Positions 4,354 to 64,000 of a DNA stretch of 64,000 nucleotides are shown piece by piece. The translations under genes and the position numbers were made by a program. This DNA is from Takakia lepidozioides (Eukaryota; Plantae; Bryophyta), in contig CM060732.1 in the NCBI GenBank assembly GCA_030704615.1, positions 82,336,001 through 82,400,000 on the forward strand, given 5' to 3'. The notes under the pieces are model-generated. The model worked only from the letters and a program-made list of their open reading frames with translations, was not told the origin of the DNA and did not search any database. The first letter of the stretch is position 1. The number at the start of each line of letters is the position of its first letter.

Positions 4354-4674
4354 CTGCTGCTGCGGCGTATCATGCTGCAGCTGGTGCTGGCAACGCTGGC
4401 TACTGCGGCCTTCGGTCTGCCGCGGCTGCGCTTCTCGCGAGTCCGGCTGCTGCACGACGAGCTGCTCCGGCCTGGAGGAGATCCGGGATTGCAGATGCTG
4501 GAGCTGGATGGACAAATGCGGGTAGGATGCGTGATTGGGCAGACGAACAGGCTGAGCTTGCACGTCTTGCACGTCCGCAGGTGGGGAGGTCGATGGTCGC
4601 CGCATCACATCGGGTGGACTGTGGGCACTCGGTTGATCGCTCCGCTGCTTCTGTCTCACATTTTTCTCGGCATC
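4354..4674 (-). CDS. Putative first coding exon (Gln-rich, MDAEKNVRQKQ...TPQQQ) of an unidentified minus-strand gene
   Basis: GC-rich open frame from ATG at about 4674 ending at a CAG|GTAGCG donor-like site at 4353. It is preceded by a (GA)n tract and a G-box. Confidence 0.35.
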
Positions 4675-4751
4675 CATGGCCTCCCCCGAGGCTGATGGAG
4701 CAAGGATGCCAACAGACTTGCGAGAGCGAGAAAGAGACAAGGCGCAGGCCT

Positions 4752-4772
4752 TCTCTCTCTCTCTCTCTCTCT
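4752..4772. repeat. (CT)n/(GA)n microsatellite
   Basis: tctctctctctctctctctc seen directly. Confidence 0.9.
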
Positions 4773-4882
4773 CGCTCCCTTCCTTCCTTCCTTCGGCAGC
4801 ACCCAAAGAGGAACGCCCTCCGTTTCTTCGGGCGCGCCCTCAGTAATATTGTTGTATATTACTGTTACCGGTTTTTTAAGAA

Positions 4883-16817: not shown

Positions 16818-16820
<3 letters not shown>
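14308..16820 (-). mobile_element. 5'-truncated LINE copy (RT domain plus C-terminal CPLC..H..C region), frameshifted
   Basis: ORF 15431-16885 has the RT motifs [29 protein letters not shown] and QGVAQGC; MFADD lies in 15300-15509. There is a ~41-bp tandem duplication near 15290-15370. The 5' junction abuts (GA)n at 16821-16852. Confidence 0.9.
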
Positions 16821-16855
<35 letters not shown>

Positions 16856-32303: not shown

Positions 32304-32340
<37 letters not shown>

Positions 32341-35300
32341 TTACAACTTCCATGAGAAGCTTGGAGACTTATAGGAAAAAGCCAGAGAGAACACTTGAGG
32401 GGTGGTGTCTGAAGATCGGATGTCATACATGTACAGTGGTGCTCTCATCAGCAGTGATTCCCTTGAGCAGATTCTTCTCTGCAAGTTCACGAGCACTCAG
32501 TCCAAGAGCCTGACTGGCATCAATCTTTATCTCCAGCTTCTTACTCGCATCCGCAATGTCACGCCGCACCGTAAACTTTAAATTACCTATAACTTCTATT
32601 TTAAGAGCTCCCTCAACATTTGGAACTGGTAATTCTCCTTGAACTTCGCCCTCATCGAAATGGCGAATAACTTCCGTTGCCTGCATAGGAAATTTGCAAC
32701 ATGTGCAGGAGAGGTTACTACAGTGCGCCTTCCCTTGACTTCTCTTTAGGCTTGCTGGTCCAAAAATCATACATTATTGAACATTCATGGCAAGCCTGTA
32801 AGTGTGTTCTTCAAAAACCCAGCTCTCAGATCAAAATAGATTGCAGCATACTCACCAATCTGAGTCCAGCTTGGTAAAATTCTACATTCTCTTCACAAAG
32901 GGCTCTACTGAGATGATACTGAGCCACCTGCCCTCGAAACATCCTTGCAGTATCTGGGACTGAACTGAATTACGCAGCTGATGATGTGGAGTACAATCTT
33001 ACCTGGGTGACAGCTATGTCCACAAACATACTATGAAGCAAGAAGGCCTTGCGGTCGCGAACTTGGCGTTCCTCTGGAGTCTTACAAGGCATTGCAGCAA
33101 GGATAGCAAATTCCTGTGCCCAAGGCCTGGCTGTGCCTTGCTTGTCTCTCCCCTGTCCTCCCCCGTTGCCTCCCCACGCCTCATCCTCGACAGGTAGGGG
33201 TGGGAACACTGAGGGGGAATCAGCTGCTGCAGTTGGGACCACCCATGTGTTTGCTCGAATCCCATGTGGAATATTGCCAAACTGCAAGGGACGTTAGAGT
33301 TGTGAGATGCCTACTACAGAAATGAAATGAAATGGTGCTTTATTACGTCTGCGGAAAGCTCATAGAGCTCACAGAGAAAGAGAGAGGCGCAGCAGAAAGG
33401 AACCAAATTTTGATAGCCAAGAAGTTATTTTACTGACAACAGGACTCCAGTACCTTGTTACGCTCAGAGAACGCTTTCATCAGATCGTCATAAGCCTGCA
33501 ACACATACTTCATACATGAATTAGAACTCTCTTGGTGCCCCCTGCTTCAGACAAAATTTAATCAAATTATCACAGAAATGTCCTGGACAAGCAAGCAATT
33601 GGGAAAGGTGGAAAACCCTATGTTGTAACTCCATTTACATGTTCCTCCACAGTTTTTGAGGCACTCAATATACTCTTCCCCCTGATCTAAGCAAATAATA
33701 CAGTGACTAATAGTAGTTCAAATAATGCGTCATGCTCTTTGGAGGTTGATGTATTGCCCGAAGTAACTGAGGATACAAACTCTTCAGCCCTCATGACAGC
33801 CAACAAGCTTCCCTATCTCACTCTCATGAATTGTCCTCTCCCTTGCTTCCTTGACCCTTACCCCCTCTCACACAATTGCAGATGGGGACGGTTGGAAATG
33901 GAACACACATTGGCAAACGCCTTGCTGAGGCGGCACAACAAAGCTACCAACGAGGTACCCTGGATCGGCTGTTTGGTGGAACTGTAGAAGCCTTTCTCAC
34001 ACACTGTTACTGCCACAAGCTTTCCATTACACAGCCTCACCTGCAACGACCATAATCACAATTCAAACTGAAGTAAATGGTCTGTAACAACTTCAAAAAA
34101 CATTGAAGGGCGATCTCATTTTTTGCAGCTGCTCGTGGAAAAAAAAGACATAATCTATTTCTTCATATCGAGGTCACAAACATTCCCCAACAGCCTCATG
34201 CATTACCATATGGTGGTAAAAAAGGATGGAGGGACTCACATCAAGAGTAAAGAAAACACCCTCAGCTCGCTTTAGATCCAGTGACTGCTTCAATGACCGC
34301 CGCAAAACTGCTGCCATTAAACATGGTTTCAGCCACACAATCATCCTCACAACTTAACAGGGCAGACTAGCCAAAGCAGAAGAATATGTGACTCGTATTA
34401 ACAAGCATTCAAAGGCAAAGTCTGTCTTCAGAGAAGCAAAATGGACGACGCTGTTTCCCCAATCATTGTTGAAAAAATCATCTGCCATCCAAGTGGACAG
34501 AGTTTAGACCAGAAGAATGCATGACAGTACCAAGTCATGTATGTCCTCAGACAAAGCTATATATGTGTCTGCATTTTCATACTCTCTAGGGATTTGAAAT
34601 AGCATCCGAAACACTTAGGTGATGAATAGAGAACCAAATTCCCCAAAACTGGCCACTCTCCGACGTACACCACTGCGGATTTCTAAGAATATACCTATCC
34701 AAAATGACCAGACAAAGGAAGCACTTCAGTTTCATGGATATCCAGACCATAACAGTGCGGATTATGTTATCTACTTAACACGAGTCCCACTATGAAAGCG
34801 AGCCTGAATTGTTATGCCTTCATCCCAAAAATCTCTTTACACATGAGACGTTGGAGCACATACACAATGAATGCACCAAAAACAAGAGTTTGACAGGAGG
34901 AGGGTTGTGATAATATCATACTAACATTGCAATGGGGGAGTCAGATGTGAAAGTGACAGAAACGTATAGAACTGCCCCAGCTTCGAAGGTGGGCACATCC
35001 CTGTCATATCACCCTTCTCTGTAGCTTCTCTTGCTGCCGCCATCGCAGCTGCAGCCTCTGGCTTGCCTTTGAGTAACCCCCTATCACCCTTTGCTGCTTC
35101 ACTACTTTCTGCACTAGTGGATGGCTTCCTAATCTCCCCATCTTGAATATCCCTGACAACTTCAACCGTATCCTTATTCAAATGGGAATCACCCTCCTCG
35201 GTTTTTGACCTATCCTCTCCAGCTGAATAATTGCTGTCCAAGTCCTTGGTTCTGCTCTCTCCATTACTTGTACTCAACAACCCTGAGTTTACATTGGCTT

Positions 35301-45088: not shown

Positions 45089-47913
45089 ATGTCAGCCTAT
45101 TGGGGAAAGTACGCGGGTAATGCATATGAACTCAAACTTCATTTAAGCTTGCCTTTTTTTCTAGTGCTATCTTCACTAAATTCTGGTCTAGAGATTGACT
45201 TGAAATGCAGGACTAGAAATCAGCAAGGAGGGATTAATAATTACCTAGGAATACTACCCATTGTGCCAGTACCGTCCAGTAAGTTGGTGCTATAGTCTCA
45301 GCATTCCCCGCAATCGTTTTTCTGATGGCCGCCTTTGCCAGTTGGTTTCAGGCACGATCTAGGAAGCATGTGCGCACAACAGCGTCTAGACACTGAGAAA
45401 TGGTCAGACCCTCGGAACAACGTCTTCTCGCGGAACAAGATAATCTGCTATGAGATTATAGCACCAACTTACTTGAGGGTACTGGCATTATGGGCATGAT
45501 CCCTAGCTGCATTGCTTTTATCCCTCCTTGCTGATTTCTGGTGTAGTGATTGATTAGATGTCAGGCCTGCGGAATCAGCAAGGAAGGATCAAAGCAAAGC
45601 TGCTAGAAAATTGCCCATGTGCCAGACTTAGTGCCCTCCAGTACTATGCTGGCTATAGTCTCATAGTAAAACTTGTTGCGACTATTCTATTCCGAGGGTC
45701 TAATGACCAGTGTTTCATTAAAGCCCCTTCTTTGTGTGTGATTGCTATCGTGTAGGAAACCAAAATGGCAAAGGCGCCCATCAGAAACACGCTTGCTGGA
45801 AATGCGGTTGAGTCCCAAACACTAATCCTCCTCTTTCTTTCCACGTCTCCTTTTTACTTGATTCGTGAGTCGGTTTTTGTATGTGATCAAGTGTAGTCAC
45901 AACCCATTGTAACCACCTCTCATGATCATCCACGGTTCCACACAATCTCAAGTAAATCTGGGACTGGAGAGATCAAAAGTGGCTTCCAACGTGCAAGTGC
46001 TACATGATGTTTGTAACCTGTTGAGAGAGTTAGCAAGCTAGAGCTTCACTTAACCATGATAGAGACATCCACTCTAGAGAGACATGTATGTATGTTGCAC
46101 GATGATTATATATTGCTCGGTTTAAACGCTGATTGAAGCTGAAACTCACTGCACAAAATGCTGGGTCAGTGTCCGGTATAATTGTCCAGACATCTTGGTA
46201 AAGAACCAAGTTTGATAATGGAGATTTTTCTTAGGATTGCACCCTGCAATCGTTCGAACAGTGACCCTGAAAATGGACTAAAGTGCTTAGTTATATAGGT
46301 GTCAATTTTGCGTCCGTTGGGCACTAGTCCATATGTAAGTATGTACCTGCAGTCTATACTCATGAAACACTTCACTGCAGAGCTAGTGATGTGTTGTTGT
46401 CGATTACGAGGTCCCTCAACATGGTCCCTTTCTGATTTTCTGATCTTGAGCAGTGACAAAGGAAATTCGACTATACATTAGTTGATCCTTGCTGGTCACT
46501 GGTACTGTTTAAAGTCTCTAGACTTTGTGCACTGTTTTCAGTCAGGACTGCATGTATAGCTGTCTAGTCACAGTCCAGAGGCCTGAGCAGATTTTTCAGC
46601 CTTGCCGTTGATTGAATTATGTATATGGTAAAGTTTCTCATGTTGGTAGCATACAGCTCGCATAGATAGTTGATTGTCACCTACTGAAACAAGTGATCTA
46701 CGTTCAATGGGGTGAATCCCATGTAAGCTTAAGCGGCCAATGTACTCATTCCTGAATCGAGTCAAGACAGAAGCGAGGAAGTTCCAGGAAACAGAAAGTG
46801 TGGCCTTCTTCGAATTCATGTACAGCACACAGTGCATGCTCAAACAAGAGACTGTGTGCTTTTTTCGCTACAGATGAGCTGATCAGGACCGCCAAGTACG
46901 TCGCCACACCAGGGAAGGGGATTCTGGCGGCCGACGAGAGCACATCAACGATCGGAAAGCGGCTGGCGAGCATTAATGTGGAGAACACCGAGAGCAACAG
47001 GCAGGCGCTGCGCGAGCTGCTCTTCACAGCTCCCGGAACCCACCAATATCTCAGCGGCGTGCTCCTCTACGAAGAAACGTTGTACCAGAAGACCATCGCC
47101 GGCAAGCCCTTCGTCAAGCTCTTGGAAGAAGGCGGGGTGATGACGGGCATCAAAGTCGACACTGGCACCGTGGACCTCGCAGGCACCAACGGTGAGAGCA
47201 CCACCCAAGGCCACGACAATCTCGCAGCGCGCTGCAAGAAGTACTACGATGCAGGCGCCCGCTTCGCCAAATGGAGAGCCGTCCTCAAGATTGGGCACAC
47301 CGAGCCCTCGCAGCTGTCCATTGACCAAAACTCCCAAGGACTTGCTCGCTACGCGATCATCTGCCAGGAGAATGGGCTGGTTCCTATTGTGGAGCCTGAA
47401 ATTCTGGTAGACGGAAGCCATGACATTCGCAAGTGCGCTGAGGTGACCGAGCGCGTGCTTGCTGCCTGCTACAAAGCTCTCAATGATCAGCATGTGCTGC
47501 TGGAGGGCACTCTGTTGAAGCCCAACATGGTGACACCGGGCTCGGATGCCCCCAAGGTGTCCCCCGAGATCATTGCCAAGTTCACAGTGCGAGCGCTGCA
47601 GAGAACGGTGCCCCCCGCTGTGCCTGGCGTCATGTTTCTCTCTGGCGGCCAGAGCGAAGAGGAGGCCACCATCAACTTGAACGCCATGAATGCTCTCCAG
47701 ACGCTCAAGCCATGGACGCTCAGCTTCAGCTATGGGCGTGCTCTGCAGCAGAGCGTGCTCAAAACTTGGTGTGGTGAGAAGAAGAACTGGACTGCTGCCC
47801 AGAGGGTGCTCTACAACCGTGCCAAGGCTAACTCTGAGGCCGTCCTGGGCAGATACAAGGGAGACTCCGGAGGAGACGCTGGGAGTCTCCATGTGAGAGA
47901 CTATAGGTACTGA
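45089..47913 (+). CDS. FBA: Fructose-bisphosphate aldolase, class I, cytosolic (355 aa, 2 exons)
   Basis: Exon 1 45089-45116 ([10 protein letters not shown]|GTAAT donor) joins exon 2 46874-47913 (CAG|ATGAG...). Motifs [44 protein letters not shown] and a C-terminal Tyr. No transit peptide. Confidence 0.96.
45290..45820. repeat. Long imperfect inverted repeat (foldback) inside the aldolase intron, with an extra partial arm at 45213-45300
   Basis: 45301-45541 is the diverged reverse complement of 45571-45806, e.g. ctgatggccgcctttgcca / tggcaaaggcgcccatcag; tggtcagaccctcggaa / ttccgagggtctaatgacca; ccctccttgctgatt / aatcagcaaggaagg. Confidence 0.8.
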
Positions 47914-50142: not shown

Positions 50143-52328
50143 TCAGTATAGCCTGCCACTACATTTGGCTGAGCGGCACTCACAAGCCTTGGTGGCTATT
50201 TTCCCATTTGCATCTAACACACCATTCACAGTGTAGCCGTAGTCATAGGTGAGCTCCTTAAATGCCGGGATATTCTCTGTTGCAAACAACATCACATGTG
50301 GAAACCTGAAGTCATGGTGGTCGTAAAGAACACATTGTACAAATAAATTGGGGTTGCAGCTGTGATTGATGAAGCGAGCAAGGCTGCCAGATTTTCTGGC
50401 ATCTATCACAAACTCAGCAGAATCAGGCAAAGGGCAAGTTGGCGAATCCATGGTACTCTCATCGATCACATCTGAGACGTCCCCCCAGCGCTCTGCGTTC
50501 CCCTTCTTGAAATCGAGATTAAAGAGGTACTCATCATTCTCCAGCTCATTGGCTGTGCTGGCGGCTAGCATATCCCCTGTGTACTCTGCAACAAAGCTAC
50601 CCGACGGAATAATATCCCACGACCGCACACCCCAGCCAGTATTTGCTGTCTTGAAGACTTCCAGCCGGTGTTTCATACCCTTCTGACTCACTCTGTTATA
50701 GCAGTTTTCGTTGCACTTGCAGTTGGGACCACATTCATATACAACCTTCCGTGCCCTTACAAGATGTCCATTGTAATTGTAAGCCAGTTGGCCACCATGG
50801 TTTCTGGCCAGACAGGAGCAAGACTTTGCGTCATCGCATCCATCCTCACAATCACAGCACTGAGGGGCAGCAGGCCTTGGTATACTCAGTGGAAACCTCA
50901 CTGTTGTGGTGTACTCATAAGGCTCTGGAAGCCTCCTGTCTACATCCACTGTGTTGACGACGTACACGGGCAACCGTTCCATCTTGTAAGAGATGTCCTC
51001 TAAAACCACACCCTCGCGGAGAGATGAATTGTGGCTCAACCTGCCCATGAACTTCACAACATTTGACCCTAGCTCAGGCTGACCAGGCAGGCGGCGCAGG
51101 AAAAATTTAAATACCATGTATTTCTCTTTCCCCGAGTCTTCCATCCAGTACCTCTCAATCTTGTACAATCCATCATAGGAGTATATTTTACCGGAAGGAC
51201 TGCTCCCGGGCATCTTACATCCACGAATCACTCGAACAGGCAAATTTAGCTTGCAGCTGTTCTGCAGTGCTAAATTTCCTCTCTCGGCCTTTTGATCATA
51301 CCCCTCCCGCTTGTCAGCAAAGTAATTGTTTCCGCCCTGCCCTGTGTATACTAACGTTTCCCCGTTATCCTCATCATCATAGCCCCCAGAGACAATGACA
51401 CTGCATGCTACATGTTTCCCCCATTCAGATTCGGTACCAAGCCAGGCGATACCTCCTTGCGATTGGTTATGCAAACCAACCAAAAGAAGCTCGAACCTGT
51501 AGAAAAACTGGTCTCCCACCCTCACCCCTGGATGTATGCCCACACCTTTGAAACTGAACCGTTCCCCCCTGTTCAGAATCTCTTTTCCTGCCCTCTGTTC
51601 TGGTCTTGCCCCACTCGGACGGACTCCTGACTTGTGTAGAGTTTCTCGCTGATGCAGGAAAGACCGTCTGAGAGCATCAAAACGTTTCAGAATACCTTTC
51701 ACCTTGGTCCTGGCCTCCTCCTCATCTGCCTCTTCCAATTCCTCGCCGATAAATGTGACTGGCTCTGAAGGCGCTGTCTCCACACAAAATTGCGTGCTCT
51801 CTTCCTTGGCTGGTCCCTTCGCCTTACCCTTACCCTTCACAGCTTGCACCGTCACTGTCGACTTTTTTACTTCCCGTGGGTAGCACTCTGGTGGCCAGTC
51901 TCGTAAAGCGACAGGCTTAGGCTTCTTCACTACTGGGACGAAGGTAGACATGTCGATCTGCCTCCGTTTTCCAGCCTGCATTTACACACACCATTCAGCT
52001 CGCTGCTCAACATTCTAGTCAAACATCAACTCTCAAAACTACATCCCAGCGTCAGATACATCAACAATTTCTTTCACCGCTGCATGATTCAAATGCTCGT
52101 TGTACAGAAGACCCCCAGCAACCCTCGACTGACAGTTCCTCCACTTACGTCAGGAGAAAGCTCCATGCAGTCATCGTCCGAAAGGTTCGAATCGGAGAGG
52201 TGTTCCACAATCGCCAGATCGTTGTATGTGTCCATGATTTCCTTGTCAGCAACCTCGGAGCCGCATTCGGTTGCTACTGAAGGACCCTCCCTCGTACCCG
52301 AACCCTGAGGATCCAACCCCACTTCCAT
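50143..52328 (-). CDS. SUVH: SUVH-family histone H3K9 methyltransferase (SRA/YDG, pre-SET, SET, post-SET), about 670 aa, 2 exons
   Basis: Exon 1 52149-52328 (GAC|GTAAGT donor, phase 0) joins exon 2 50143-51975 (TGCAG|GCT). SRA motifs GVRVGDQF, SGGYDDED, YTGQGG, YSYDGLY; pre-SET Cys cluster; SET motifs GWGVRS, RFINHSCNPN, ELTYDYG; post-SET CECRSAKCSGRLY. Confidence 0.95.
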
Positions 52329-53008: not shown

Positions 53009-55027
53009 GTGACATTGAAGAGCCGAGAATGCTACTTGTATGATCCGTTGGATTCTGTGTCACGCAGGGCGGTCTGTAATCAAGCACAGGGGTTTATTGG
53101 GCAGCAAAGAGGGGGCAAGGGCGTGGATTTTGGTCTGGCCACAGACTCCAGTGCTTCTAACGGATGGAGAAGACAGAGACGAGTTTGGGAGGAAAACAAC
53201 AGTCACACTTGTGGAAGCAGAGGGTATGTCGGCACAGTTTACCATGAGAGACGATTGGAGGAGACAGTCCACAGGTTGGATGTGATGGAGCAACGAGGCT
53301 TTCGGCCATATTTTGAGACATGTGTGAGTCTCTTGCAGGAATGCGCAAAGACGAAGAACTTGGCTAAGGGCAAGGGGGTGCATGCTCACATCATCAAAAG
53401 TGGGTTCGAGCCAGACATCTTTCTGGGAAACACACTTGTCAGCATGTATTTCAAGTGTGGTAGTGTAATGGATGCACGCCAAGTTTTCACCAAAATGCCT
53501 AAGCGAGATGTCATCTCCTGGAATGCCATGATTGCAGGATTAGCTCAGCATGGTCATGGCGACGAGGCATTCCAACTTTTTTCTCACATGCAAAGAGAAG
53601 GCATGAGAACAGACAAGGTCACCTTCATAAGTATCCTCAAGGCATGTGTCACCCCAGCAGCTCTGGAACAGGGTAAGCGGCTCCATGCGGGCATCACCGA
53701 AGCTGGATTTGAATCAGATGTCCGAGTGGGGACCGCACTTGTCAGTATGTATTGCAAGTGCGGAAGTTTAGGGGATGCGCGCCAAGTGTTCTTCAAACTG
53801 CCTCAACGGAATGTGATCTCATGGAATGTGATGATTGCAGGATTAGCTCAGCATGGTCATGGCGAGGATGCTTTCCAACTCTTTTGGGAAATGCAAAGAG
53901 AAGGTATGAATGCAGACAAGATCACTTTCAATACCCTTCTCAAGGCATGTTTCTGTCCAGCTGCTCTGGAACAAGGCAAGCTGGTTCATGCAGGCATCAT
54001 CAAAGCTGGATTTGAGTCAGATGTCCGAGTGGGGACAGCACTTGTTAGCATGTACTGCAAGTGTGGTAGTGTGGAGGATGCGTGCCAAGTGTTCTTCAAA
54101 ATGCCTGAACGGAACTTGATCTCATGGAATACCATGATTGCAGGATTAGCACATTATGGTTCTAGTGAGGAGGCATTCCAACTCTTCTGGCAAATGGAAA
54201 GGGAAGGCATGAAGGCAGACAATGTCACTTTCATTAGCATTCTTGATGCATGTTCAATGCTAGCAGATGGCAAGCGAGTCCATGCCTGCATTATTAAAGC
54301 TGGGTTTGAGTCAGATGTCCGAGTGGGGACTTCACTTGTGAGCATGTATTGCAAGTGCCAGAGTCTGGAGGATGCTCGACAAGTGTTTGAGAAGATGCCT
54401 CAGAGAGATGTGATTTCATGGACTGCTATGATTGCAGGATTGGCTCAGGAAGGGCATGGTGCAGAGGCATTGCAACTCTTTCAGCAAATGCAACAAGAAG
54501 GTGTGCAGCCAGATAAGGTTACTTTCATTTGCATCCTGAACATATGCTCCAGCCTAGCAGCTCTGGAGGAAGGCAAGAAGGTCCACATCAACATCATAAA
54601 ATCTGGATGTGATTCAGATGCCCGAGTATGTAAGGCCCTTGTCGACATGTATGCCAAGTGTGGGAGTCTGGCAGATGCACAGCAAGTGTTTGACAATAAC
54701 CGGGAACGAGACATTGATGCATGGAATGCGATGATTGTAGGTTGTGTCCAGCATGGGCAAGGTAAGGAGGCCCTCCAACTCTTTGCACAAATGCAAGAGG
54801 AAAGTGTGAAGCCAGATGCCGTCACTTTCGATGGTGTTCTCTCTGCATGCAACAAAATGGGCCTAGCGGATGCGGGTCATCGTTACTTCCTCTCCATGAG
54901 CCAAGATTACGGCATCACACCAACAGCAAAGCATAATAGCTGCATGGTTGACCTTCTTGGTCATGCAGGAGGCTTGGAAGAAGCAAAGGAATTCAGCAAC
55001 AAATTGGCAACTGAGCCAGGTGCTTAG
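53009..55027 (+). CDS. PLS-class pentatricopeptide repeat protein, truncated at the start of the E domain
   Basis: About five P-L-S triplets (DVISWNAMIAGLAQHG; DKVTFISILKAC; DVRVGTALVSMYCKCGS). Start is uncertain (first in-frame ATG about 53285). The TAG falls in EPGA*MWGALL. Confidence 0.9.
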   Translation: MTLKSRECYLYDPLDSVSRRAVCNQAQGFIGQQRGGKGVDFGLATDSSASNGWRRQRRVWEENNSHTCGSRGYVGTVYHERRLEETVHRLDVMEQRGFRPYFETCVSLLQECAKTKNLAKGKGVHAHIIKSGFEPDIFLGNTLVSMYFKCGSVMDARQVFTKMPKRDVISWNAMIAGLAQHGHGDEAFQLFSHMQREGMRTDKVTFISILKACVTPAALEQGKRLHAGITEAGFESDVRVGTALVSMYCKCGSLGDARQVFFKLPQRNVISWNVMIAGLAQHGHGEDAFQLFWEMQREGMNADKITFNTLLKACFCPAALEQGKLVHAGIIKAGFESDVRVGTALVSMYCKCGSVEDACQVFFKMPERNLISWNTMIAGLAHYGSSEEAFQLFWQMEREGMKADNVTFISILDACSMLADGKRVHACIIKAGFESDVRVGTSLVSMYCKCQSLEDARQVFEKMPQRDVISWTAMIAGLAQEGHGAEALQLFQQMQQEGVQPDKVTFICILNICSSLAALEEGKKVHINIIKSGCDSDARVCKALVDMYAKCGSLADAQQVFDNNRERDIDAWNAMIVGCVQHGQGKEALQLFAQMQEESVKPDAVTFDGVLSACNKMGLADAGHRYFLSMSQDYGITPTAKHNSCMVDLLGHAGGLEEAKEFSNKLATEPGA

Positions 55028-55165
55028 ATGTGGGGTGCCTTGCTTGTACAGAGCCTGCAGATTACTTGGGAATGTGGAACTACCAGAAACGCAGCAGATT
55101 GTATCCTCAAGTTGAAACCACAATTTGCAGCAGGGCATGTGCTGGCTTCAAACATCCATTCTGGG
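55028..55165 (+). pseudogene. Decayed PPR E-domain sequence downstream of the stop
   Basis: MWGALL-[+4 nt]-RACRLLGNVELPE-[frameshift]-AADCILKLKPQFAAGHVLASNIHS matches the E1/E2 consensus WGALLGACRIHGNVELAE..A...LxLEP..AA.YVLLSNIYA. Confidence 0.8.
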
Positions 55166-56304
55166 CTAGCGAGTGGGATAAGCAGTAAGACTAAAGAAAT
55201 AGATTGATCAATAAGGACAGCATACACATCACACCAGCAAAGAGGTGGCCATTTCTTTGGGGCTTATCAACACCCCCCCTGGACCCAAACTGCATAAGAA
55301 AGAACCTTCGGGTATTTGGAGATCGCCACACAGCCACCAAATTGTTCTCCAAGATTGTTGGGTAAGAAGTCGCCGAAGGAATGCGAACTGTTCCAACTCA
55401 AAGAACGGGTTTTGTTCTTTTTGGGATTCGTGGTGATGAGGACACAAGTGCTCGGTCAAAGTCTTGTAAGCTGTCTGGCTAGGGACACTCCAGTTCTCAT
55501 GGATAAAGACTTTCTTGCCCTCTGTGGACTAAAGGACTGCCAAAGGGCCTCCTGACGATGGGCACTGAGAGGAAGTTCAAGCCTCAAGAGTAAGTTGCAT
55601 ACCTCTCGACAGTCCGGGTCAATCCAATGTTCAGAAAATGAAGCACTTGGTACTCTGTCAGACTGCACAGTGTAAAAGCTAAATCAATTTTCTAGAGCAG
55701 AACCGTGACAAAAGAGTGTGGTTGTACAATATGTACAACTAGGCACATAAACCTACTCCACAAAAATTGAAAATAAATCTAAGAGAGTGTGTGTGGGACA
55801 AAAACATACCATAGGTGGCAGTGATCGCCCACATAAACCTAAGTACACAAGTACTTCAAATTAAATTTGAGAGAGAGAGAGAGAAAAGTAGCATATGTGT
55901 GTATGCTTCTACTTGCCAAACCCTAAGACATTAAAATTAAAATTAAATATACAGCATAGAGATATATATAGAGAAAGATCATTTATGCTTGTCAAATCCC
56001 ATAACATATATGTGGAAGTGCTAAAGTCTCTCTAAAACCTTGTCACTAGGAGAGTATCTAGCAATGAAAGATATTTCAAAACGCATCTTATATTGCGGAA
56101 TGCTTGCATGTAATCTGATGAACAATCGGTCAAAAATTCAAAAATGAATGGCTATGGTCGGTCATCGTTATAATGACACTTTATAACTATAGTTGTTTGT
56201 TTTATTAGTTTATCATAATAATAATGCACACACAAATCAATGCGTATTAATGATATCTCATCCACTTAATATACAATGCATAATCATTTACCATCCAAAA
56301 TTCA

Positions 56305-56810
56305 ACGGCCGTTCCATTCCGTCCAACGGTGCATGTCCCTTACCAACCAACGGGAAAAACCGGCAGCTAGTTACATGCTAGCCGACTGATTATGAGGATT
56401 TCCGAGTGAAAATTGAAACCTTCGGAAATTTATCGAGTATATTCACATAGGAAATTGACTATTGCAGTTACCATTAAGGGGAAGCAACCGACTCCCCAAC
56501 CCACTTAGCCGGTTGGTTTTCAGAATGAGGGGCCATTGGCTGGTTCAACTGAAATTATTTCCCGGACGCTGTCCCTTACCATCCAAAGTCCAACGGTTAC
56601 ACAACCATTTACCATCCAAAACTCAATGGCCGTTCCATTCCGTCCAACGGTGCATGTCCCTTACCATCCAAAGTTCAACGGTTGCACAACCATTTACCAT
56701 CCAAAACTCAATGGCCGTTCCCTTCCGTCCAACGGTGCATGTCCTTACCATCCAAAGTTCAACGGTGGTTTGCGTCCAACGGATGGTGGTTTGCGTCCAA
56801 CGGATGGTAG
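56305..56810 (+). repeat. Tandem repeat array built on CCATCCAAA(A/G)TTCAACGG / CGTCCAACGG motifs
   Basis: ~89-bp unit at about 56575-56660 and 56665-56750, a further copy at 56305-56345, and 21-bp subrepeats at 56765-56810. Confidence 0.8.
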
Positions 56811-57524
56811 TCTTTATCCAATGGACGATAAATTTTAATAGATCTTTCATAGCATTAATTGCTAGGGGATAATTGCACACTATAAGAATTACAAGCCCTC
56901 ATTTGAACGTGCACTTCTTCCACGAGCTCTCAAGGTAAGCCTCCACTATGCCTCCTTGTTGTATTGCAATGTTTTTTCATTTTATTCTTTTATTTTGTAC
57001 TTTGGTGTTTATTTTTTGTTTTTATTTTGTGATCTTAAGTCTAAGGGTGGAGTGTTTGTTGCAGGAAGGACATACGTTGCAAATACGGATCGGCCCGTCG
57101 GCGAGAATCGCAGTACGAACGTGTCGTCATTATACTTGTCGGGTATGATGTTTCTACCATCTACGATATTATGATTTTGACATTCATAAGTAATGTAACT
57201 TTGGGATTATACAATTGTGTAAAATACAATTGAATATGCTTGAATATATATACATATATATTTATATATAGAATATACCATCTTCGAATGAATAAATATT
57301 ACAAGTGTAAATATTTGTTATCCGATATTATTTTTGGATAACATGAAGATGAGATCTCACATACAAATATTTACGTGGATTTTGGATCCTACTAAGAATT
57401 TGGATGCCGCACTTTTTTATTGACTTAAAAATGTCGGTTTTTCAATGCATCGCGTACTACTTTATCAAGATGGGATATTATTTTCAATCAGTAAGTGACA
57501 TATTATTAAAGCATTATGAATCAA

Positions 57525-57706
57525 GACACCAAGTTGTAGCCCGGTGATAATGGGCACATACCACCTACGGAAGTGGTTGTGGGTTCAATCCGCCCTTGGT
57601 GTCACAAAGGTGTCCACCTTCCTAGCGGAAGGCAATAATCCTTCGGGATGAAGAAACGCCATAATTTACGCTTCCTTCGGGAGGCGTCAAATATTTAATA
57701 TTAAAT
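57525..57706 (+). mobile_element. tRNA-derived SINE (type A)
   Basis: A-box TAGCCCGGTGA, B-box GGTTCAATCC, 3' hairpin ACGCTTCC-TTCG-GGAGGCGT and an AT-rich tail. 12-bp TSD ATTATGAATCAA at 57513-57524 and 57707-57718. Confidence 0.85.
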
Positions 57707-57955
57707 ATTATGAATCAAACAATACTTTTAGGGTTTAGGCGATACTATGGATCAACCCTTTCATTACTTTATTACTGATTGTATTGAGTCCATATACCTC
57801 CAATGATATGTGAACGACTTAAATTATATATTATCAATTGATTGGGCATTATTATGGTCGGTGCACCTATTCAATAGCTGCTTGAATATGTAAATTGTTA
57901 CATATTCAATGTTGGATGGGACACGATGAATCTCATTCATTATTCTGGTTCAAAC

Positions 57956-58563
57956 CAGTATTGTACTGTTATGTCCATTTTAACATATCAGACTGGTCAT
58001 GGTATGCCTAATGGACCTTTAATGCCAAGCTGATAGTGCCTAGTGTAGATCCACAGTGGCCGTGTGGGTAGGGTACATGGCTGGTATGAGTATTCATATG
58101 TAGGACATACCCTGATCCTAGGCATGAGTAAGTCAAATTTTAAATGGAGATACTAGGTCTATATGTGCAACTGTATGGTATGTACATATTAGAAGTATAT
58201 ATTGTGTATAGATAGGATATGTAGAGAATGATTTCTTCATTTTTTTTTAATAAAATTTGCAAAGATATAGTGCTATTTTCTACATTAATGCACAAATGTG
58301 AATAAGGATAAGCACAAAAAAAATGTATCGTTACACATACCTATGCTAGCTTGGGTTCATCAATCCTCACTACATGTTTCAAGCCGAGTATGAAAATAGT
58401 CCATACTTAGACTGGTATGGTAGGTAGGGAGTAGGTCCAATGTTCAAAACCTGGGGGTCCAGGGTATAGTCGGGGTATAAGCCCCAAGACATACCCAACC
58501 GGTCTGTTCTACAATACCATTTACTCATACTTAGGCGCAAAGTAATATATCAGTACAACACTG
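57956..58563. mobile_element. hAT-type MITE
   Basis: 13-bp TIR CAGTATTGTACTG / CAGTACAACACTG (1 mismatch); decayed 8-bp TSD GTTCAAAC/TTTCGAAC. Confidence 0.65.
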
Positions 58564-58617
58564 TTTCGAACATGAAAGAATATTATTTATGCAAATTACA
58601 TTAGAACAAACGGAATC

Positions 58618-58710
58618 ATATATATATATATAACGCCAACCAAAGCTAGCATAAATAAGAACCTCTTCCCCTTGCGGGTACTGCCTCATTTCAGGGGTGG
58701 GCTCTATCCG
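58618..58710 (-). mobile_element. 3' end of SINE-like element type B with (TA)n tail
   Basis: Homologous to 5170-5262 (acgccaacc.aagctag..taaataaga.cctcttcc..ggggtgggctct). Confidence 0.55.
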
Positions 58711-58787
58711 ACGGAGTCACTGATTACATGGGACTATCATAACAATGTTAATTCAGTAGGTGGTGGATAAAAATATTATGTCACAAT

Positions 58788-58939
58788 GACAACCAAGTTG
58801 TAGCCCAGTTGTAATGGATACATACCATCTCGGAAATGGTTGTGAGTTGAATCCACCGATTGGTGTCACAAAAGTGTTCACCTTCATACTGGAAGGCAGT
58901 AGCCCTTCGTGTCAAGAAACACCATTATTTTACGCTTCA
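58788..58939 (+). mobile_element. tRNA-derived SINE (type A), 3'-truncated
   Basis: gacaaccaagttgtagcccagttgtaatgg...gagttgaatcc...ttacgcttc, aligned by eye to 57525-57680. Confidence 0.75.
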
Positions 58940-59116
58940 CTAACCCGCATATTGAATAGGAATATAATAGGTCTAATCATGTAATAGTTAAAATTTTGCA
59001 AACCTACTATTTTGATATACATAAGATTTTTGTTTGTTTGCTATTGTGTGTTGGCGGATCAATATGTAAAATTGTGATGGGTTCAACATGATTATTACTG
59101 TCAAATAAAGTATGGA

Positions 59117-62100
59117 ATGCGACTCTTCCGGTTTGCTCCTCGGTTTGAGCCAGATCGTAGACCTCCACCAAGACCTCCACCAAGACCTCCACGTCGTCGA
59201 GCCCCTGACATTGTTCCGACCCTGGCCACCCCATGGACATGACAATTACATTTCAGTGGATCTGGTAGTCGACTGATACATCAGACAGTTGCATTAGAGT
59301 TGCATCAAGATATCGCTGGTCCTTCGATCATACCTATTGGAGCCTCCATTCCATGTCGCATTATTATTGATGATGATGATGATGATGAGGTTCTTCATCG
59401 TGAAGACACGTATCCCGTTCCTGACCCAAATGTTCACCCCCCTCTTACTGAGAATGAGTTTGGTGCGGCATTGGAGAGTATTGAGCTAGTAATTCATGGT
59501 CACAGTGATATACCCAAGATGACTCCAGCTCATAGTATAGTCTCTATGACTGTTGATGTCGATGTGAATATTGCCCATACTATATAGTCAGGTCATGTTG
59601 ACATGCATGCACCCATACGTGTCCCTATTGACCCGCATTCATACGTCAGATGGTTTGTTACTCCGGTGCCGAGCTCTCGTCAGAGATTGTCCATATGTGA
59701 TTTAGAGGCGGGTTCTGGTGCATATGACCGTCGTAGGTGACAGTACTGGTGGGGCATGACCTATCTGGCATCTGTTGTCAATTGGTGTACCGATGGCTGA
59801 ATGTCATGATAGTGAGATCTCTAGGGTCATTCAATACATTGGCCAGAGTACATAGCACCGTCATTTGGCACACGTCGACATTGTTCAGACTTGGGATGTA
59901 TGGCATATTATTCGTGACTGTGAGGCAGAGCGTGTATTGACAAAGATACGACAATGTTTTGACCCTACACGGATTGCGGCATTGATGGTTGATACTGGGA
60001 CGACTCACAACACTTTGAGATTTCTTAAGTCGTTTGACGTGTATGACGTTTTCAAGAACGTTAATTCCACAAATGTCGTACAACGGATGAAGGTTAGTTT
60101 TAATTTATTGGTTTGTGCATACATATTTATATTACGTTTGTGAGTTTATTGTTGTTATATTTAGGAGTTCTATACCGAGGCTTCAGCATCAGGGCTTGGT
60201 TGGGGCCGCACGGATGGTGTTACATGTGGTGTGCAAATTGATAGCATTGAGGCATGGGTCACATATATGATATTGTGTTATCAGAAGCGCTATGGTTGCC
60301 GAGTTGGTGATGAAGTAGTTGTCAAACTTGGTATCGACTCGCGACTCCACTATGGCGAAGGCGGACATGTTTATTCAATTCCAAACATTTGGTTGCAGTA
60401 ACGTAATCTTTATAACCATTGTAAGATACACGTCACTCCATTCATGTTAATTATTAATGTGATTATTTTTCTTTCAAGTATGTGATGTTGCATTGGAGTT
60501 GCTTTTTGACCGCGGGTTGTTATAATGTATATCCATTGCCAAGTGGGAGGGTAAGGATGCTGGCCCTGAGGTTATCGCTCATATTGCCAACACGGAGGCG
60601 TTTCCGGTTGGAGGTCATCTCTTCGACCAGTTGGGGCAATTTATGACACATGGGCTGAGCATGTCACATGGACGTCATGTACGCTTCACTCTTGTGGAGT
60701 GTCATGATCTACATTGTATATATGCTCTCGTTTGCAGAGGTGGAGTGTCCGCCACTGGCACATCGTTTTGCCCTTGGTACCGTTACCAAAGCCACTTCCA
60801 GCTACATCACTCACCTACATGTGGTTGAGCCTTTTGATATCATTTTGTCCGTGTCAACTCGGTATGCTACTCGAATTGACATCATTATGGTACGTGTTGA
60901 TAAATTCATCATACAATTTATATATATATAATTTTGTTCAAAATATCAATGATAAGTTCTGTATAAATCAATGAAGTCTCATTGGTCATTTTCATGTTAC
61001 TAATATGTAAGTTGATGCGATGTGTCAGGAATTGAACCCATGGTTTGAAGGGATGTCATACGATGAGCCCATTAGCTGTTGTACAGAGGCATACCGTGAA
61101 AAGGCCACACATATGAAGGTATTGCGAAATTGGCCCATGGATCGTGCTAACTCGAGCAAGGTAATTTGTCTACCCAATGTTTAAATGATATTCAATGTTT
61201 GTAAATTATATTATTTTATTTTATAAATCGTTATTTGTATGATGTATATGATAAGCAGACACTACAGTGTCACTGTTTTATTATATTACTAATTTGTGTT
61301 GTAAATACATTCAAATTTAGGTGAACCCCCCCCCCCCCCGCCCATGAGTGCATTATCATATTGCGCCAAGCATGCCATCATCCGCACCGTGCTTAAGATA
61401 ATGCGATACTTGCAGAGGATGGCACATGAGGCAGACAAGATCCATCATGTTCCAACAGACGTCCCAAGTCGGTTCCGACAGATACATAACCTCCTCATGG
61501 TAATTTATTTTTCAGAACTATATATAATTATTAATTTAGTAATGTACCATAATATAATTATACTAGATATTACATGCTCATATCATATGGATTTAATTAT
61601 TTTTCATTGCATACCATAACAATATTTTAATACGAGTTTGTGGTGAAATGATATGCATGTAGGGGCCAGAATTTCAAGTTTCATGTCGGGTGGATACTCA
61701 TACTTACAAAGGCACCAAGTACACGGATATCTTGTATGGGCAATCGGATGGTGTGATCTCCGATAGGATATTGGCGCAACATCGATTGTTTCTTTCGGTA
61801 AAATCGAAAACTATATATTGTCTTTGATAATTTTCATGTTTATGGAACGTCCATTATATATATTATGTTATTGTTTTATATATAATATGATTGTGGTGTG
61901 TGTAGATCATCGCAGGCTTTCCTACCCCCGACCGCTTTGAGTACACTCAAAAAATGTGGGATTGTTATCAGCGATTTGACTACATACAACAACATTATGA
62001 TGCATTGGAAGCAGGCACTGAGCCTACTGGCGAAGATTTGTTCGTAAATTTTCACATGCATTGGTTCATACAAATTGGTTTATTGGTATCCACAAATATT

Positions 62101-62520
62101 TTATACCATCACTAAAAATAAAATTGATATGTATAGCATTGCATATTTGACAAAGGAGTGGCATGCAACTATGGCCATTGGGGATATTGTTACACCTTAT
62201 ATCCATATACAAGGAGCACATGCTGGACAGATTGCTGCTTTGTTGCATGTCGGTGTGACTATTGGCCGCATGAAGAACGAGGTGCTTGAGAGAAACACAG
62301 AGAGATGAAAAACTTGCGTACAGCACAAGGGACCGGTCGAGGTGGTCCGGATGCTCATGTCCGACAGGTACAAAATGCAAGTTTATTTTCAGGTTGCATC
62401 AGCTTTGTACTATACATATGATATAATGAATACGTAATTATAATTTTGTTGTGGTCATATATAAACTGCAGAGTGGGATCGTATGTGCTTTGACGCAAAG
62501 ATGAGAACGTTATACATCAA
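59117..62520 (+). mobile_element. Decayed intron-containing DDE transposase gene with a RAG1/Transib/Chapaev-type core
   Basis: GT-AG bounded exons 59117-60092, 60165-60402, 60479-60889, 61029-61160, 61321-61499, 61663-61797, 61906-62043, 62137-62367. Motifs VVVKLGIDSR, IAKWEGKD, FTLVECHDLH, TGTSFCPW, YCAKHAIIR, SDGVISDRIL, TPYIHIQGAH, IGRMKNEVLER. Several stops and indels. Confidence 0.7.
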
Positions 62521-62764
62521 GTTACACTTGATTCTGGATGATCTCATATCGGTGAGTACATATCATTTGCACCCGGTTATCAGCGTCACGTCCGTCAGTC
62601 AGCGTCAGATCACGTCAGACGCTGACGCTGACGGGACCTCCTTCACGTCAGGTTTCGGGAATATTCTAGTAAAAAAAGTATCAGGTAAAATATTGTCACT
62701 TAAGCAGCCACGTCGCCGACACGGTGGCGGTGGCAAATACATTTTGAAAAATAATAAAATGAAA

Positions 62765-63935
62765 GCGACCGCCAATTATGGCGGTCGCTTTATATTTCAA
62801 AAATTTAGAAATAAGAGCAACTGCCAATTCTGGCGGTCGCTTTATATTTCAGAATTTTAGAAATAAGAGCGACCGCCAACAAGGCGTTCGCTTAAAAAAT
62901 ATTTATAAAAAAACAAAATTGGCGGTCGCCTAATTCTTAAAAAAGAAATAGCAACCTCCGTACTGGCGGTCGCATAATTTTAAGAATATATAAAAAACAA
63001 GCGACCGCCAGAATTGGCAATCGCTTGTTTTCAATAATATATAAAAAACAAGCAACCGCCATAATATGGCGGTCCCTTTATCTTACAAATATATTAAAAA
63101 AACTAGCAACCACCTTACTATGGCGGTAGCTTTATTTTAAAAATGTATTAAAAAAAACCAGCGACTGCCATAATATGGCGGTCGCTATATTTTAAATATA
63201 TTAAAAAAACCAGGCGGTCACTTTAATTTAAAAAAAAAACAAAACAAAACAAAACAGCGACTGCCATAATATGGTGGTCGCTTTTTTTTTTAAAAAATTA
63301 GAATATTTTAAAAATAACTATTTTAAACTTTTTTAAACTTTTTAAACAACTAAAAAATAATATTAATTTCAGAAAATGCAGCGGCCGCCAGTAATATCGG
63401 TCGCTGCATTTTATTCATTTATTCACTTCATTTATTCATTTTGTTTTTCTTTTTTTTTCTTCTTTTTTCTTCTTTTTATAAGGGATAAGGGGCCCTGAAA
63501 ATTTAAAATAGAGCGACCGCCAGTAATGACGATCGCTTTTATTTTTTATTTATTTAAATAGAGTGACCGCCATTATTGGTGGTCATTTTTTTAAAAACAA
63601 AATAAACCGGCCGCCATTATTGGCGGTCGCTTCTATATTTTTAATTTCTGAAAATACAGCGACCGCCAGTAATGGCGGTCGCATTTTTTTTTAAAACAAT
63701 AATAGAGCGACCACCATTATTGGCGGGCGCTTTTGTTTTTTATTTATTTTTAAATAGAGCGACGACCATTACTGGCGGTCGCTTGTATATTTTTAATTTC
63801 TGAAAATGTTGCGACCGCCTGTTTCGGTGATCACTTTTATTTTTCTTTTTTTAAAATAAAACGACCGTCAATACTAGTGGTCGCTTGTATATTTTTAATT
63901 TCTGAAAACATTGCGACGGCCAGTAATTGCGTTCG
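62765..63935. repeat. Array of mini-palindromes GCGACCGCCA-N(3-6)-TGGCGGTCGC in AT-rich spacers (transposon subterminal-type repeats)
   Basis: More than 20 gcgaccgcc/ggcggtcgc motifs, mostly in inverted pairs; the array probably continues past the window end. Confidence 0.85.
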
Positions 63936-64000
63936 CTTTTATTTTTTTTGTTTTTTTAATTGAGTCATTACTGGCTTTTTTGTTGTTTTTTTAAAATGTA

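Follow-up and report, generated by a model that had tools for sequence, protein, structure and literature searches.

The window, a 64,000-nucleotide stretch of Takakia lepidozioides DNA, contains on its forward strand (59603-62551) nine collinear exons with GT-AG introns that belong to one decayed gene. The interval holds a disrupted and truncated copy of a transposase-type gene that has introns and occurs in multiple copies in this land plant. The copy is probably what is left of the transposase of a dead cut-and-paste DNA transposon, whose family would be a divergent, undescribed lineage within the RAG1/Transib assemblage in its broad sense (Chapaev included). The assignment of the gene to a particular superfamily is provisional, and among the relatives that could be detected the Transib/RAG1 enzymes come nearest.

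The first-pass annotation had joined GT-AG exons into a single decayed gene, which we confirmed, but it had listed eight exons where we count nine. The nine exons and their eight GT-AG introns, all on the forward strand, span 59865-62551, and an extra coding block lies upstream at 59603-59800. This block belongs to a broken region (59603-59864) with a TGA stop at 59738-59740 and a frame break at ∼59780-59865; its segment 59684-59779 matches positions 1976-2071 of the related locus L008 in tblastx, and indels occur among paralogues at 59781-59814. Farther upstream, positions 59117-59602 form part of the repeated unit and are covered by paralogous DNA contigs, and homologues of the ORFs of this region were sought in other loci and not found. 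The recognizable part of exon 1 (59865-60092; ...FDVYDVFKNVNSTNVVQRMK) ends at a donor GT at 60093. In the uninterrupted homologous ORF P0011 (VDKYRVLKGAPTSSITRHLERWAVEA...), exon 1 runs on into exon 2, and this contiguity confirms the junction across the 72-nt intron 1 (60093-60164). Exon 2 (60165-60368; GLGW...) is homologous to loci L001, L003, L006, and L008 and is followed by intron 2 (60369-60478, 110 nt), which the clade of P0011 lacks. Exon 3 (60479-60889) reads VCDVALELL, IAKWEGKD, FTLVECHD, and GGVSATGTSFCPW[C], and precedes intron 3 (60890-61028).

In the second half of the gene, exon 4 (61029-61160; ELNPWFEG...RNWPMDRANSSK) matches L006 weakly at RDWPMDRPNEHK, and intron 4 (61161-61320) leads to exon 5 (61321-61499), in which a run of 14 C residues (61326-61339) is followed by ...YCAKHAIIRTVLKIM. 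The junction of exons 4 and 5 is out of frame beside this run, and the mismatch is probably an indel within the run. Exon 5 is homologous to L001, L002, L006, L008, L012, and L014, and intron 5 (61500-61662) is absent from both the P0011 clade and L015. Exon 6 (61663-61797; ...YGQSDGVISDRILAQHRLFLS, with the counterpart YGQSDGIISDRFL in L006), intron 6 (61798-61905), and exon 7 (61906-62039; IIAGFPTPDRFEYTQKMWDCYQRFDY..., homologous to L001 and L006) follow, and the end of exon 7 at 62039 preserves the frame across intron 7 (62040-62136) into exon 8. Exon 8 (62137-62367), which is uninterrupted in L006, reads AYLTKEW..TPYIHIQGAH and TIGRMKNEVLER, continuing as HREMKNLRTAQGTGRGGPDAHVRQ past a 1-nt deletion after 62292. 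Intron 8 (62368-62473) uses the second AG of gcagag as its acceptor, and exon 9 (62474-62551; WDRMCFDAKMRTLYIKLHLILDDLIS, with the counterpart VDWDRMDLDKEMLVQYIRLRMSFNDMIP in L006) ends at a donor GTGAGT at 62552. The exons beyond exon 9 are missing from the window copy. Scans of 55000-64000 for tRNA genes and Rfam families were empty, and a second copy of the gene was sought within the window and not found.

The lesions of the window copy comprise at least two stops and at least four frameshifts, several of which can be read against paralogues from the same organism. The first-pass annotation had restored 2 nt in exon 3 and repaired LER[K]H in exon 8, and both proposals are borne out: paralogues carry GT behind 60776, which undoes a 2-nt deletion, yields FCPWCTVTKA, and restores the second Cys of FCPW[C], and they carry A behind 62292, which yields EVLERKHREMKNL. 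They also have an extra base behind 60367/60369, and exon 2 of the window copy lacks 1 nt at its end (∼60367). At the upstream stop, all paralogous contigs have G at 59740, and thus TGG was changed to TGA by a G-to-A transition; at the TAA stop of exon 3 (60523-60525), paralogues have C at 60524 (TCA, Ser), and the change of TCA to TAA is a transversion. The proposed C-to-T decay also agrees with the 454 differences seen in the comparison with DNA contigs, 204 of which are C to T (n = 92) or G to A (n = 112), a bias that would be expected of methylated, silenced DNA.

All eight motifs on which the first-pass annotation had based its reading were found where it had placed them, and their block order is the same in other loci, where they fall in the blocks best conserved among homologues. 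They are VVVKLGID (60315-60338, first Asp at 60336-60338), IAKWEGKD (60535-60558), FTLVECHDLH (60685-60714, with the Glu of ECHD at 60700-60702 and its Asp at 60706-60708), GGVSATGTSFCPW (60739-60777, after ECHD), CAKHAIIR (61362-61385), SDGVISDRIL (61744-61773), TPYIHIQGAH (62192-62221, His at 62204-62206 and 62219-62221), and IGRMKNEVLER (62261-62293, Glu at 62279-62281 and 62288-62290). The catalytic Glu had been placed at 62288; the residue with RAG1-like spacing, 20 residues past the second His, is instead the Glu at 62279-62281, and the Glu in exon 8 is conserved. The sequence contains a split C2H2 zinc-site pattern, in which a CxxC pair follows the ECHD Asp by 21 residues (D-x20-CxxC) and an H-x4-H pair stands ∼20 residues before the Glu. 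The intact protein would have been an RNase H-fold DDE enzyme with its first Asp on beta-1 (KLGID), its second carboxylate at or just past beta-4 (ECHD), a CxxC pair ∼20 residues beyond, an insertion of ∼300 residues, and then the H-x4-H pair and the catalytic Glu 20 residues past its second His. This is how RAG1/Transib proteins are laid out, and there both Cys and both His residues are expected to bind a common zinc ion. An enzyme of this kind would, by analogy, nick the transposon ends and release the element via hairpins on the flanking DNA.

Transib genes are usually intron-less and encode ∼700 amino acids, whereas the window gene has at least nine exons, and its family has no significant sequence similarity to Transib. 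In addition, S/A-R comes after the first Asp in the window family, where Transib has G. A canonical Transib protein contains, in order, K-x-G-x-D, FTMID...SAQRCFLC, HAWIR, NDGNTARR (NDGNTARRYF), IH-x4-H, and IG...SE (PMC9435367 supplement); compared with it, the window gene has KLGID, FTLVE.., HAIIR, SDGVISDR, IH-x4-H, and IG....E in the same order. Both the window gene and Transib (HzTransib, PDB 6PQN/6PQR; EbaTransib_0044, PMC9435367) have the CxxC soon after the second carboxylate, and the predicted product of the window gene would, like Transib, have an RNase H-fold DDE core after a pre-RNase H-like segment. In mouse RAG1, the catalytic residues are Asp600, Asp708, and Glu962, and the zinc ligands are Cys727, Cys730, His937, and His942 (PMC4914335). 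RAG1 has D-x18-CxxC in place of the D-x20-CxxC of the window gene, and the two have in common the IGxxxxE block and an H-x4-H pair whose second His precedes the Glu by exactly 20 residues. The distance from the second carboxylate to the Glu is ∼300 residues in the window gene compared with 206-214 in Transib and 253 in RAG1 (PMC1131882). In contrast to RAG1, a host recombinase, the window gene is a repeated element, gave no RAG1 hit in Pfam, and shows neither a RING nor an N-terminal zinc domain; no RAG2-like partner was noticed in the window.

In one sequencing run of DNA from this organism, 235 contigs align to the stretch with at least 80% identity, and the family is therefore multi-copy; the same comparison found no RNA contigs on the stretch. 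The host genome would contain between several and about a dozen copies of the transposon family. Homologues also extend beyond this organism: exon 3 as the sole query retrieved 28 proteins at E ≤0.001 among 1.84 billion, homologues of one exon had E values as low as 5e-21, and the exon order recurs in unrelated metagenome contigs at 40-55% amino acid identity. Exons are collinear at 15 or more loci; L006 and L007 have exons 2, 3, 5, 6, 7, and 8 in identical order, and L001-L005, L008-L014, and L015 have subsets of them. Overall, dozens of dispersed, diverged copies were found in varied contexts and several organisms. Nine or more exons separated by GT-AG introns of plant type indicate that the family would be a long-standing resident of plant genomes.

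The suggestion that this is a plant lineage of the RAG1 superfamily holds up in that the gene is intron-rich and multi-copy with RAG1 and HzTransib as the nearest structures, but a sequence-profile link was not found and the structural scores are weak. The searches worked from single exons or natural ORFs. Scanned exon by exon, the gene matched nothing in Pfam or NCBIfam, and a Pfam scan of all members of the family alignment at E ≤10 was also empty, in a copy of Pfam that may lack RAG1 domain models. Sequence searches of the PDB gave no match, whether run with phmmer (exons 2, 3, and 8) or from two family profiles, and when 5.8 billion proteins were searched with a profile at E ≤10, the window family itself and nothing else was returned. 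Among language-model features, the top clusters were those of the RAG1 pre-RNase H, RNase H, and ZnC2 domains (0.97, 200 of 256 features shared), with DUF1280 clusters at 0.97 and Transposase_21 at 0.92 (141 of 256); with exon 8, DUF4218 (0.80) and RAG1_ZnH2 (0.78) were the named clusters that came closest, both under the level of trust.

Structure searches used two AlphaFold models of P0011, a natural homologue, rather than of the window copy. The models show a beta1-beta2-(beta3)-alpha1-beta4 arrangement, with a predicted beta-1 strand in the region of exon 2 and with KLGID and ECH at strand ends. With model 1, RAG1 and HzTransib accounted for the top eight and most of the top 50 Foldseek matches in the PDB (E 0.009-0.1), and VIA gave Z scores of 6.0-7.4 for 34 RAG1, HzTransib, and BbRAGL entries compared with 3.3-3.8 for Hermes. 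With model 2, RAG1-family representatives took ranks 1-5 and 7 of 48,161 chains (Z 3.8-4.7), and in a second look the RAG1 family filled the first 32 rows, the Z score of this model being at most 5.0. RAG1, HzTransib, and BbRAGL thus came first in four structure searches with weak scores (E ≥0.009, Z 3.8-7.4), which fell with the better-supported second model and lie where the models may share no more than a common arrangement with these proteins. The models weakly suggest that, of the solved structures, those of RAG1, HzTransib, and BbRAGL lie closest. The family is unlike ordinary CACTA, hAT, and MULE transposases: no Pfam family matches any member, the transposase domains of hAT, MULE, and P included, and Hermes, a hAT transposase, scores well below RAG1 and HzTransib.

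A different assignment has to be weighed, namely that the family belongs to the CMC group (CACTA/Mirage/Chapaev) as a very divergent member, and that its likeness to RAG1 and HzTransib arises from the general D..D-CxxC...HxnH..E layout that CMC transposases share and from the structures available for comparison. We know of no solved CMC-type transposase structure, and none was among the PDB matches; because of this, the PDB comparison does not separate Transib from Chapaev, Mirage, or CACTA. CACTA-type elements are common plant relatives, CMC proteins are weak shape and feature neighbors of the window family, and the CPxC and ExxERxH patterns of the gene are CACTA/Chapaev-like. A shape search of predicted structures in the ESM-Atlas gave weak rows of DUF1280/DUF1258 and Transposase_21 (TM 0.33-0.45) and no RAG1 cluster, those carrying PF02992 Transposase_21 being from Arthropoda and Rotifera; yet all of these TM values are below 0.5 and come from a model with pLDDT 54. 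Likewise, Transposase_21, DUF1280, and, for exon 8, DUF4218 appear among the feature clusters, but the RAG1 clusters score above Transposase_21 in both similarity and features shared, and PF02992 and PF13960 remain unmatched even at E = 10 in 20 members and the window exons. The CACTA signature consists of H-x3-H and a GP..WMY..ER block that precedes or includes the catalytic Glu, whereas the His pair here is H-x4-H as in RAG1/Transib, the GP..WMY..ER block is absent, and the window and its homologues have IGR(M/L)KNEVLERKH. Furthermore, the HAxIR and xDGxxxxR blocks agree with the canonical Transib protein. A CMC assignment in place of Transib/RAG1 kinship is on this evidence unlikely, although still to be reckoned with. 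Kapitonov and Koonin placed Chapaev inside a broad Transib superfamily (PMC4411706), and the boundary between Transib and CMC is therefore blurred.

The copies could also be decayed segmental duplicates of a conserved host gene and no mobile element at all. Such a relative exists outside the window: a sister clade (P0011, P0037-P0042, P0023, and P0028) has conserved synteny and a core dN/dS of 0.08-0.21, and looks domesticated under purifying selection. In this clade, the ECHD Asp is replaced (ECHH) and the KNE Glu is lost (KNA|AMG); a Pfam scan of the neighbors of the syntenic gene in L001 was empty. Neither terminal repeats nor a target-site duplication was found for the window copy, as such duplicates would predict. 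However, the dispersed copies, the window copy among them, share only 35-42% identity with the host-gene clade, retain the ECHD Asp and the KNEVLER Glu, and carry introns 2 and 5, which the host gene lacks, and there are dozens of them, diverged, in differing contexts and several organisms. We consider an origin by host-gene duplication very improbable. As with domesticated transposases (RAG1, or plant FHY3/FAR1 from MULEs), the sister clade is syntenic and selected, in its case without the ECHD Asp and KNE Glu, whereas the window copy represents the mobile-type, decayed form. The syntenic derived gene has saturated synonymous divergence, which argues for long residence in the host lineage, and the horizontal acquisition that the first-pass annotation had offered as an option is disfavored, if it is meant to be recent. 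Finally, the absence of Pfam and PDB sequence matches is all that speaks for a chance pattern of motifs in non-coding DNA, a reading refuted by the single-exon homologues, by the collinear exons, by the same-organism paralogues, and by the purifying selection on the related clade.

The transposase gene copy stops at ∼62572, where it abuts a repeat of very high copy number (62572-64000) that lies outside the gene and cuts or interrupts it; the 3' end of the copy would thus be interrupted or truncated. Loose contig ends fall at 62572 in 19 cases, and the summed contig depth there is 6395 compared with 80-880 over the gene. The repeat contains ∼25 palindromes of the type AGCGACCGCCA-N4-TGGCGGTCGCT, arrayed at 62740-63950. 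We considered this array as subterminal repeats of the transposase element and rejected it: it starts past the 62572 junction, it belongs to another repeat whose summed contig depth is far higher, and none of the 11 related loci searched (L001-L011) contains its motif. A comparison of 55000-59900 with 62300-64000 found no pairing terminal inverted repeats, and CACAATG, CACAGTG, and CACTA ends sought around the copy did not pair across it. Transib elements are marked by 5-bp target-site duplications and CACAATG-like terminal inverted repeats, and CMC elements by duplications of 2-4 bp, with CACTA termini and subterminal repeats. The 5' end of the window copy was not located, and none of the other loci contains both ends.

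Transib is among the rarest eukaryotic DDE superfamilies (a broad screen recovered 35 Transib transposases; bioRxiv 10.1101/2021.09.26.461848), and its importance lies chiefly in being the source of RAG1. In the searchable literature, plants are represented only by Transib-like proteins found in their assemblies (PMC9435367). The supplement of that study lists six plant species, all flowering plants, with one record on a 3.6-kb scaffold, and a search of it for the hallmark motifs of the window family found none. Within the searchable literature, the Transib/RAG1 group is thus not documented as resident elements in plants. It is possible, and we propose it tentatively, that bryophyte-type land plants harbor an old, vertically inherited, intron-bearing, and still multi-copy sister lineage of Transib/RAG1, from which a fixed, catalytically disabled host gene arose independently. 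If so, that host gene would mark a second domestication, this time in plants, of the family behind RAG1, and both the resident intron-containing lineage and its selected host-gene derivative would widen the host range and age of RAG1-related enzymes; the family may also bridge Transib and Chapaev/CMC. The window copy itself is a relic, of value because it adds another dated, decayed member and is evidence of past mobility of the family in the host genome.

Three-frame translation of positions 59100-62700, combined with motif mapping and guided by homologues, located every motif listed in the first-pass annotation at its stated coordinates; that observation is confirmed apart from minor corrections. 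The GT-AG splicing described there was upheld, but nine exons rather than eight were read on the + strand: E1 (59865-60092), E2 (60165-60368), E3 (60479-60889), E4 (61029-61160), E5 (61321-61499), E6 (61663-61797), E7 (61906-62039), E8 (62137-62367), and E9 (62474-62551). All eight introns start with GT and end with AG, and a ninth donor, GTGAGT, lies at 62552, directly after E9. P0011, a natural homologue, reads through both the E1/E2 and the E2/E3 junction in one uninterrupted ORF, which confirms introns 1 and 2. An upstream coding block on the same strand (59603-59800) contains a tblastx match to the related locus L008 (59684-59779); no stretch of 59117-59602 could be linked to any homologue. 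The E4/E5 junction is out of frame beside a 14-C run at the start of E5 (61326-61339), the sole such junction without a documented indel, and the run may reflect either a change in homopolymer length or misassembly.

The window copy is one among many, and it is decayed. When Logan contigs from a DNA sequencing run of this organism were placed on 59117-62620 at an identity of at least 80%, 235 contigs matched (54 at ≥99%, 47 at 95-99%, 98 at 90-95%, and 36 lower), and these paralogues carry bases that are missing or altered in the window. Thus, they contain the GT behind 60776 that turns FCPW/YRY into FCPWCTVTKA, as well as the A behind 62292 that yields NEVLERKHREMKNLRTAQGTGRGGP, as in the related locus L006; both restorations had been proposed from the window sequence alone. 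They also have one base more at 60367/60369, at the end of E2, and read TCA (Ser) with C at 60524 and TGG (Trp) with G at 59740, where the window copy has the stops TAA and TGA. Among 454 differences, 92 were C>T and 112 were G>A, and in the best-supported rows the window had A/T against paralogue G/C 20 times and the opposite 7 times. This bias fits deamination of methylated cytosines in the window copy, the mode of decay suggested previously. No contigs of two putative RNA runs fell on 59117-62620, which is not proof of silence.

Loose ends of 19 contigs coincide at 62572, where the summed depth, 80-880 over the gene, jumps to 6395; this indicates that a separate repeat of very high abundance, beginning with CACCCGGTTATCAGCGTCACG, truncates or interrupts the gene copy at this point. 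Past this point lies an array of ∼25 GCGACCGCCA-N4-TGGCGGTCGC palindromes; these palindromes, of the type AGCGACCGCCA-N4-TGGCGGTCGCT and spaced ∼50 bp apart, continue to the window end (64000). The array belongs to the high-copy repeat and not to the gene copy, and its motif was not found in the 11 related loci L001-L011. No inverted repeats pairing both flanks of the gene copy, and no CACAATG, CACAGTG, or CACTA ends around it, were found. Elsewhere in the window, two ∼150-nt repeat copies (57528-57674 and 58792-58938; 1264 nt apart, 75-85% identical) resemble a tRNA-derived SINE by eye only, and ARAGORN and Rfam gave no match to them. Units of 85 nt, tandem and dispersed (TTACCATCCAAAACTCAATGGCCGTTCC...CAACGGTGCA), occupy 56249-56810 and include a perfect 21-nt tandem at 56764-56805. 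Two related LINE-type ORFs on the minus strand, of 1198 aa (28757-32353) and 484 aa (15431-16885, truncated), have an endonuclease/reverse-transcriptase look by eye. Three long uninterrupted ORFs, also judged by eye, resemble a fructose-bisphosphate aldolase (46798-47913, +), a SET-domain (SUVH-like) histone methyltransferase (50143-51981, -), and a pentatricopeptide-repeat protein (53009-55027, +), consistent with land-plant nuclear DNA.

With E3 as the sole phmmer query, 28 of 1.84 billion representative proteins matched at E ≤ 0.001 (best 4.7e-21), most of them short ORFs predicted from metagenome or Logan contigs. On the homologue contigs the window exons reappear with order and strand kept: E2, E3, and E5 to E8 in L006/L007; E2, E3, and E5 in L008-L011; E2 and E3 in L003-L005; E2+E3, E5+E6, E7, and E8 in L001, L002, and L012-L014; and decayed E3, E5, and E6 in L015. 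The best-conserved blocks of the homologue alignments are the eight motifs of the first reading, and the motif series in the window is not a product of chance.

We next consider the family to which these motifs belong. Sequence profiles were silent: Pfam and NCBIfam did not match the window exons, Pfam matched neither the longer homologues nor, with E values up to 10 admitted, any of the 20 members of the family alignment, the PDB gave no match to the family by phmmer or by profile, and a profile run against 5.8 billion proteins returned nothing beyond the family's own members. In mouse RAG1, the catalytic residues are D600, D708, and E962 and the zinc ligands C727, C730, H937, and H942 (PMC4914335). 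The D-to-C spacing is 19 in RAG1 and 21 in the window copy, and from His 62219-62221 to Glu 62279-62281 there are exactly 20 residues, as between the second His and Glu of mouse RAG1; this Glu is therefore a better catalytic candidate than the Glu at 62288 chosen initially. One canonical Transib protein reads, in order, K-x-G-x-D, FTMID...SAQRCFLC, HAWIR, NDGNTARR, IHKLLIH, and PIGQLSE (supplement, PMC9435367), for which the window copy has KLGID, FTLVECHD...SATGTSFCPW[C], HAIIR, SDGVISDR, IHIQGAH, and TIGRMKNE. Transib-like proteins from plant assemblies have been reported (PMC9435367); they differ from the window family, because none of its hallmark pentapeptides was found in that supplement.

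Feature and fold comparisons were made with P0011, the longest natural family ORF (462 aa, E1 to E3). By language-model features, residues 225-462 ranked RAG1 fragments carrying PF26025 pre-RNase H, PF26100 RNase H, and PF26101 ZnC2 at the top (score 0.97, 200/256 features in common); DUF1280 clusters and unannotated cnidarian and sponge clusters also reached 0.97, and a Transposase_21 cluster reached 0.92. For AlphaFold model 1 (residues 150-462, pLDDT 54), RAG1/HzTransib made up the top 8 and most of the top 50 Foldseek matches (E 0.009-0.1), and VIA-align placed 34 RAG1, HzTransib, and BbRAGL entries at Z 6.0-7.4 (109-154 residues, 2.7-5.3 Å), compared with 3.3-3.8 for Hermes and 3.4 for HIV RT RNase H. 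Model 2 (residues 240-462, 35-row alignment, pLDDT 66.6, pTM 0.61) gave weaker Foldseek E values (≥0.16); an unbiased scan of 48,161 representative chains ranked RAG1, HzTransib, and BbRAGL 1-5 and 7 (Z 3.8-4.7), and in a second comparison they filled the first 32 rows (Z 3.9-5.0), followed by Prp8 RNase H-like domains (3.2-3.6). The ranking was consistent across these P0011 models, but the absolute scores are weak and in a range where a shared general arrangement alone may suffice. In the models, KLGID closes beta-1 and ...VEC closes beta-4, with H/D two residues further on, so that two residues are candidates for the second catalytic carboxylate: the Glu of ECH (60700-60702) and the Asp at 60706-60708. 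The Asp, originally proposed, is present, but alignment to the FTMID block of a canonical Transib favors the Glu position as the candidate.

An affinity with the CACTA/Mirage/Chapaev (CMC) group instead of RAG1/Transib is a less likely alternative. We know of no solved CMC-type structure, and no CMC-type entry occurs among the PDB matches of the P0011 models, so the PDB does not separate Transib from CMC. In an ESM-Atlas shape search, model 1 gave only weak rows (TM 0.33-0.45), namely one DUF1280, one IS4-like, and one ZBED1 cluster plus two clusters bearing Transposase_21, and no RAG1 cluster. By features, E8 (from an L006 ORF) lay nearest to unannotated sponge, Mucoromycota, and nematode clusters (0.92-0.95), its nearest named clusters being DUF4218 (0.80) and RAG1_ZnH2 (0.78), both below trust level. 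Some authors group Chapaev with CACTA and Mirage. Kapitonov and Koonin place it within a broad Transib superfamily (PMC4411706). We conclude that the family is a member of the RAG1/Transib-Chapaev assemblage, with RAG1/Transib closest on present evidence as a provisional placement. Identity as an ordinary plant CACTA, which the first reading had already argued against, or as an ordinary hAT or MULE is clearly excluded.

A second clade (P0011, P0037-P0042, P0023, and P0028; 59-94% identical to P0011) is related to the window gene and lies on metagenome contigs (L001:9635-13806, L012:10001-13834, L013:3046-5968, L014:1478-5217, and L002:587-2605). On L001, L012, L013, and L014 synteny is conserved, in the order DNAJC11, clade gene, and a long ORF of ∼880-1190 aa, which is split in L012, with an ORF of ∼260 aa between DNAJC11 and the clade gene in L001 and L012. 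The clade core has dN/dS of 0.08-0.21, with synonymous sites saturated between deeper pairs. KLGID, ECH, CxxC, and H-x4-H are retained, the Asp of ECHD is replaced by His (ECHH), and the Glu region KNEVLERKH has become KNA|AMGRKH, split by an intron. This is the pattern of a putatively domesticated, catalytically altered derivative, and it argues that the family has long resided in the host lineage and speaks against a recent horizontal arrival, horizontal acquisition having been one option raised initially. On L015, a Tara Oceans marine metagenome scaffold, decayed family exons (3866-4806) read FECHDLV...FCPWC, with E5 and E6 fused and containing stops; the family is therefore not restricted to land plants.

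Overall, the proposal of an intron-rich, RAG1-related lineage is partly supported: the locus holds one copy, decayed and cut at its 3' end, of a DDE transposase gene that is multi-copy, bears introns, and has the RAG1/Transib architecture, and its superfamily assignment is provisional. The family represents a lineage undescribed in the literature searched.
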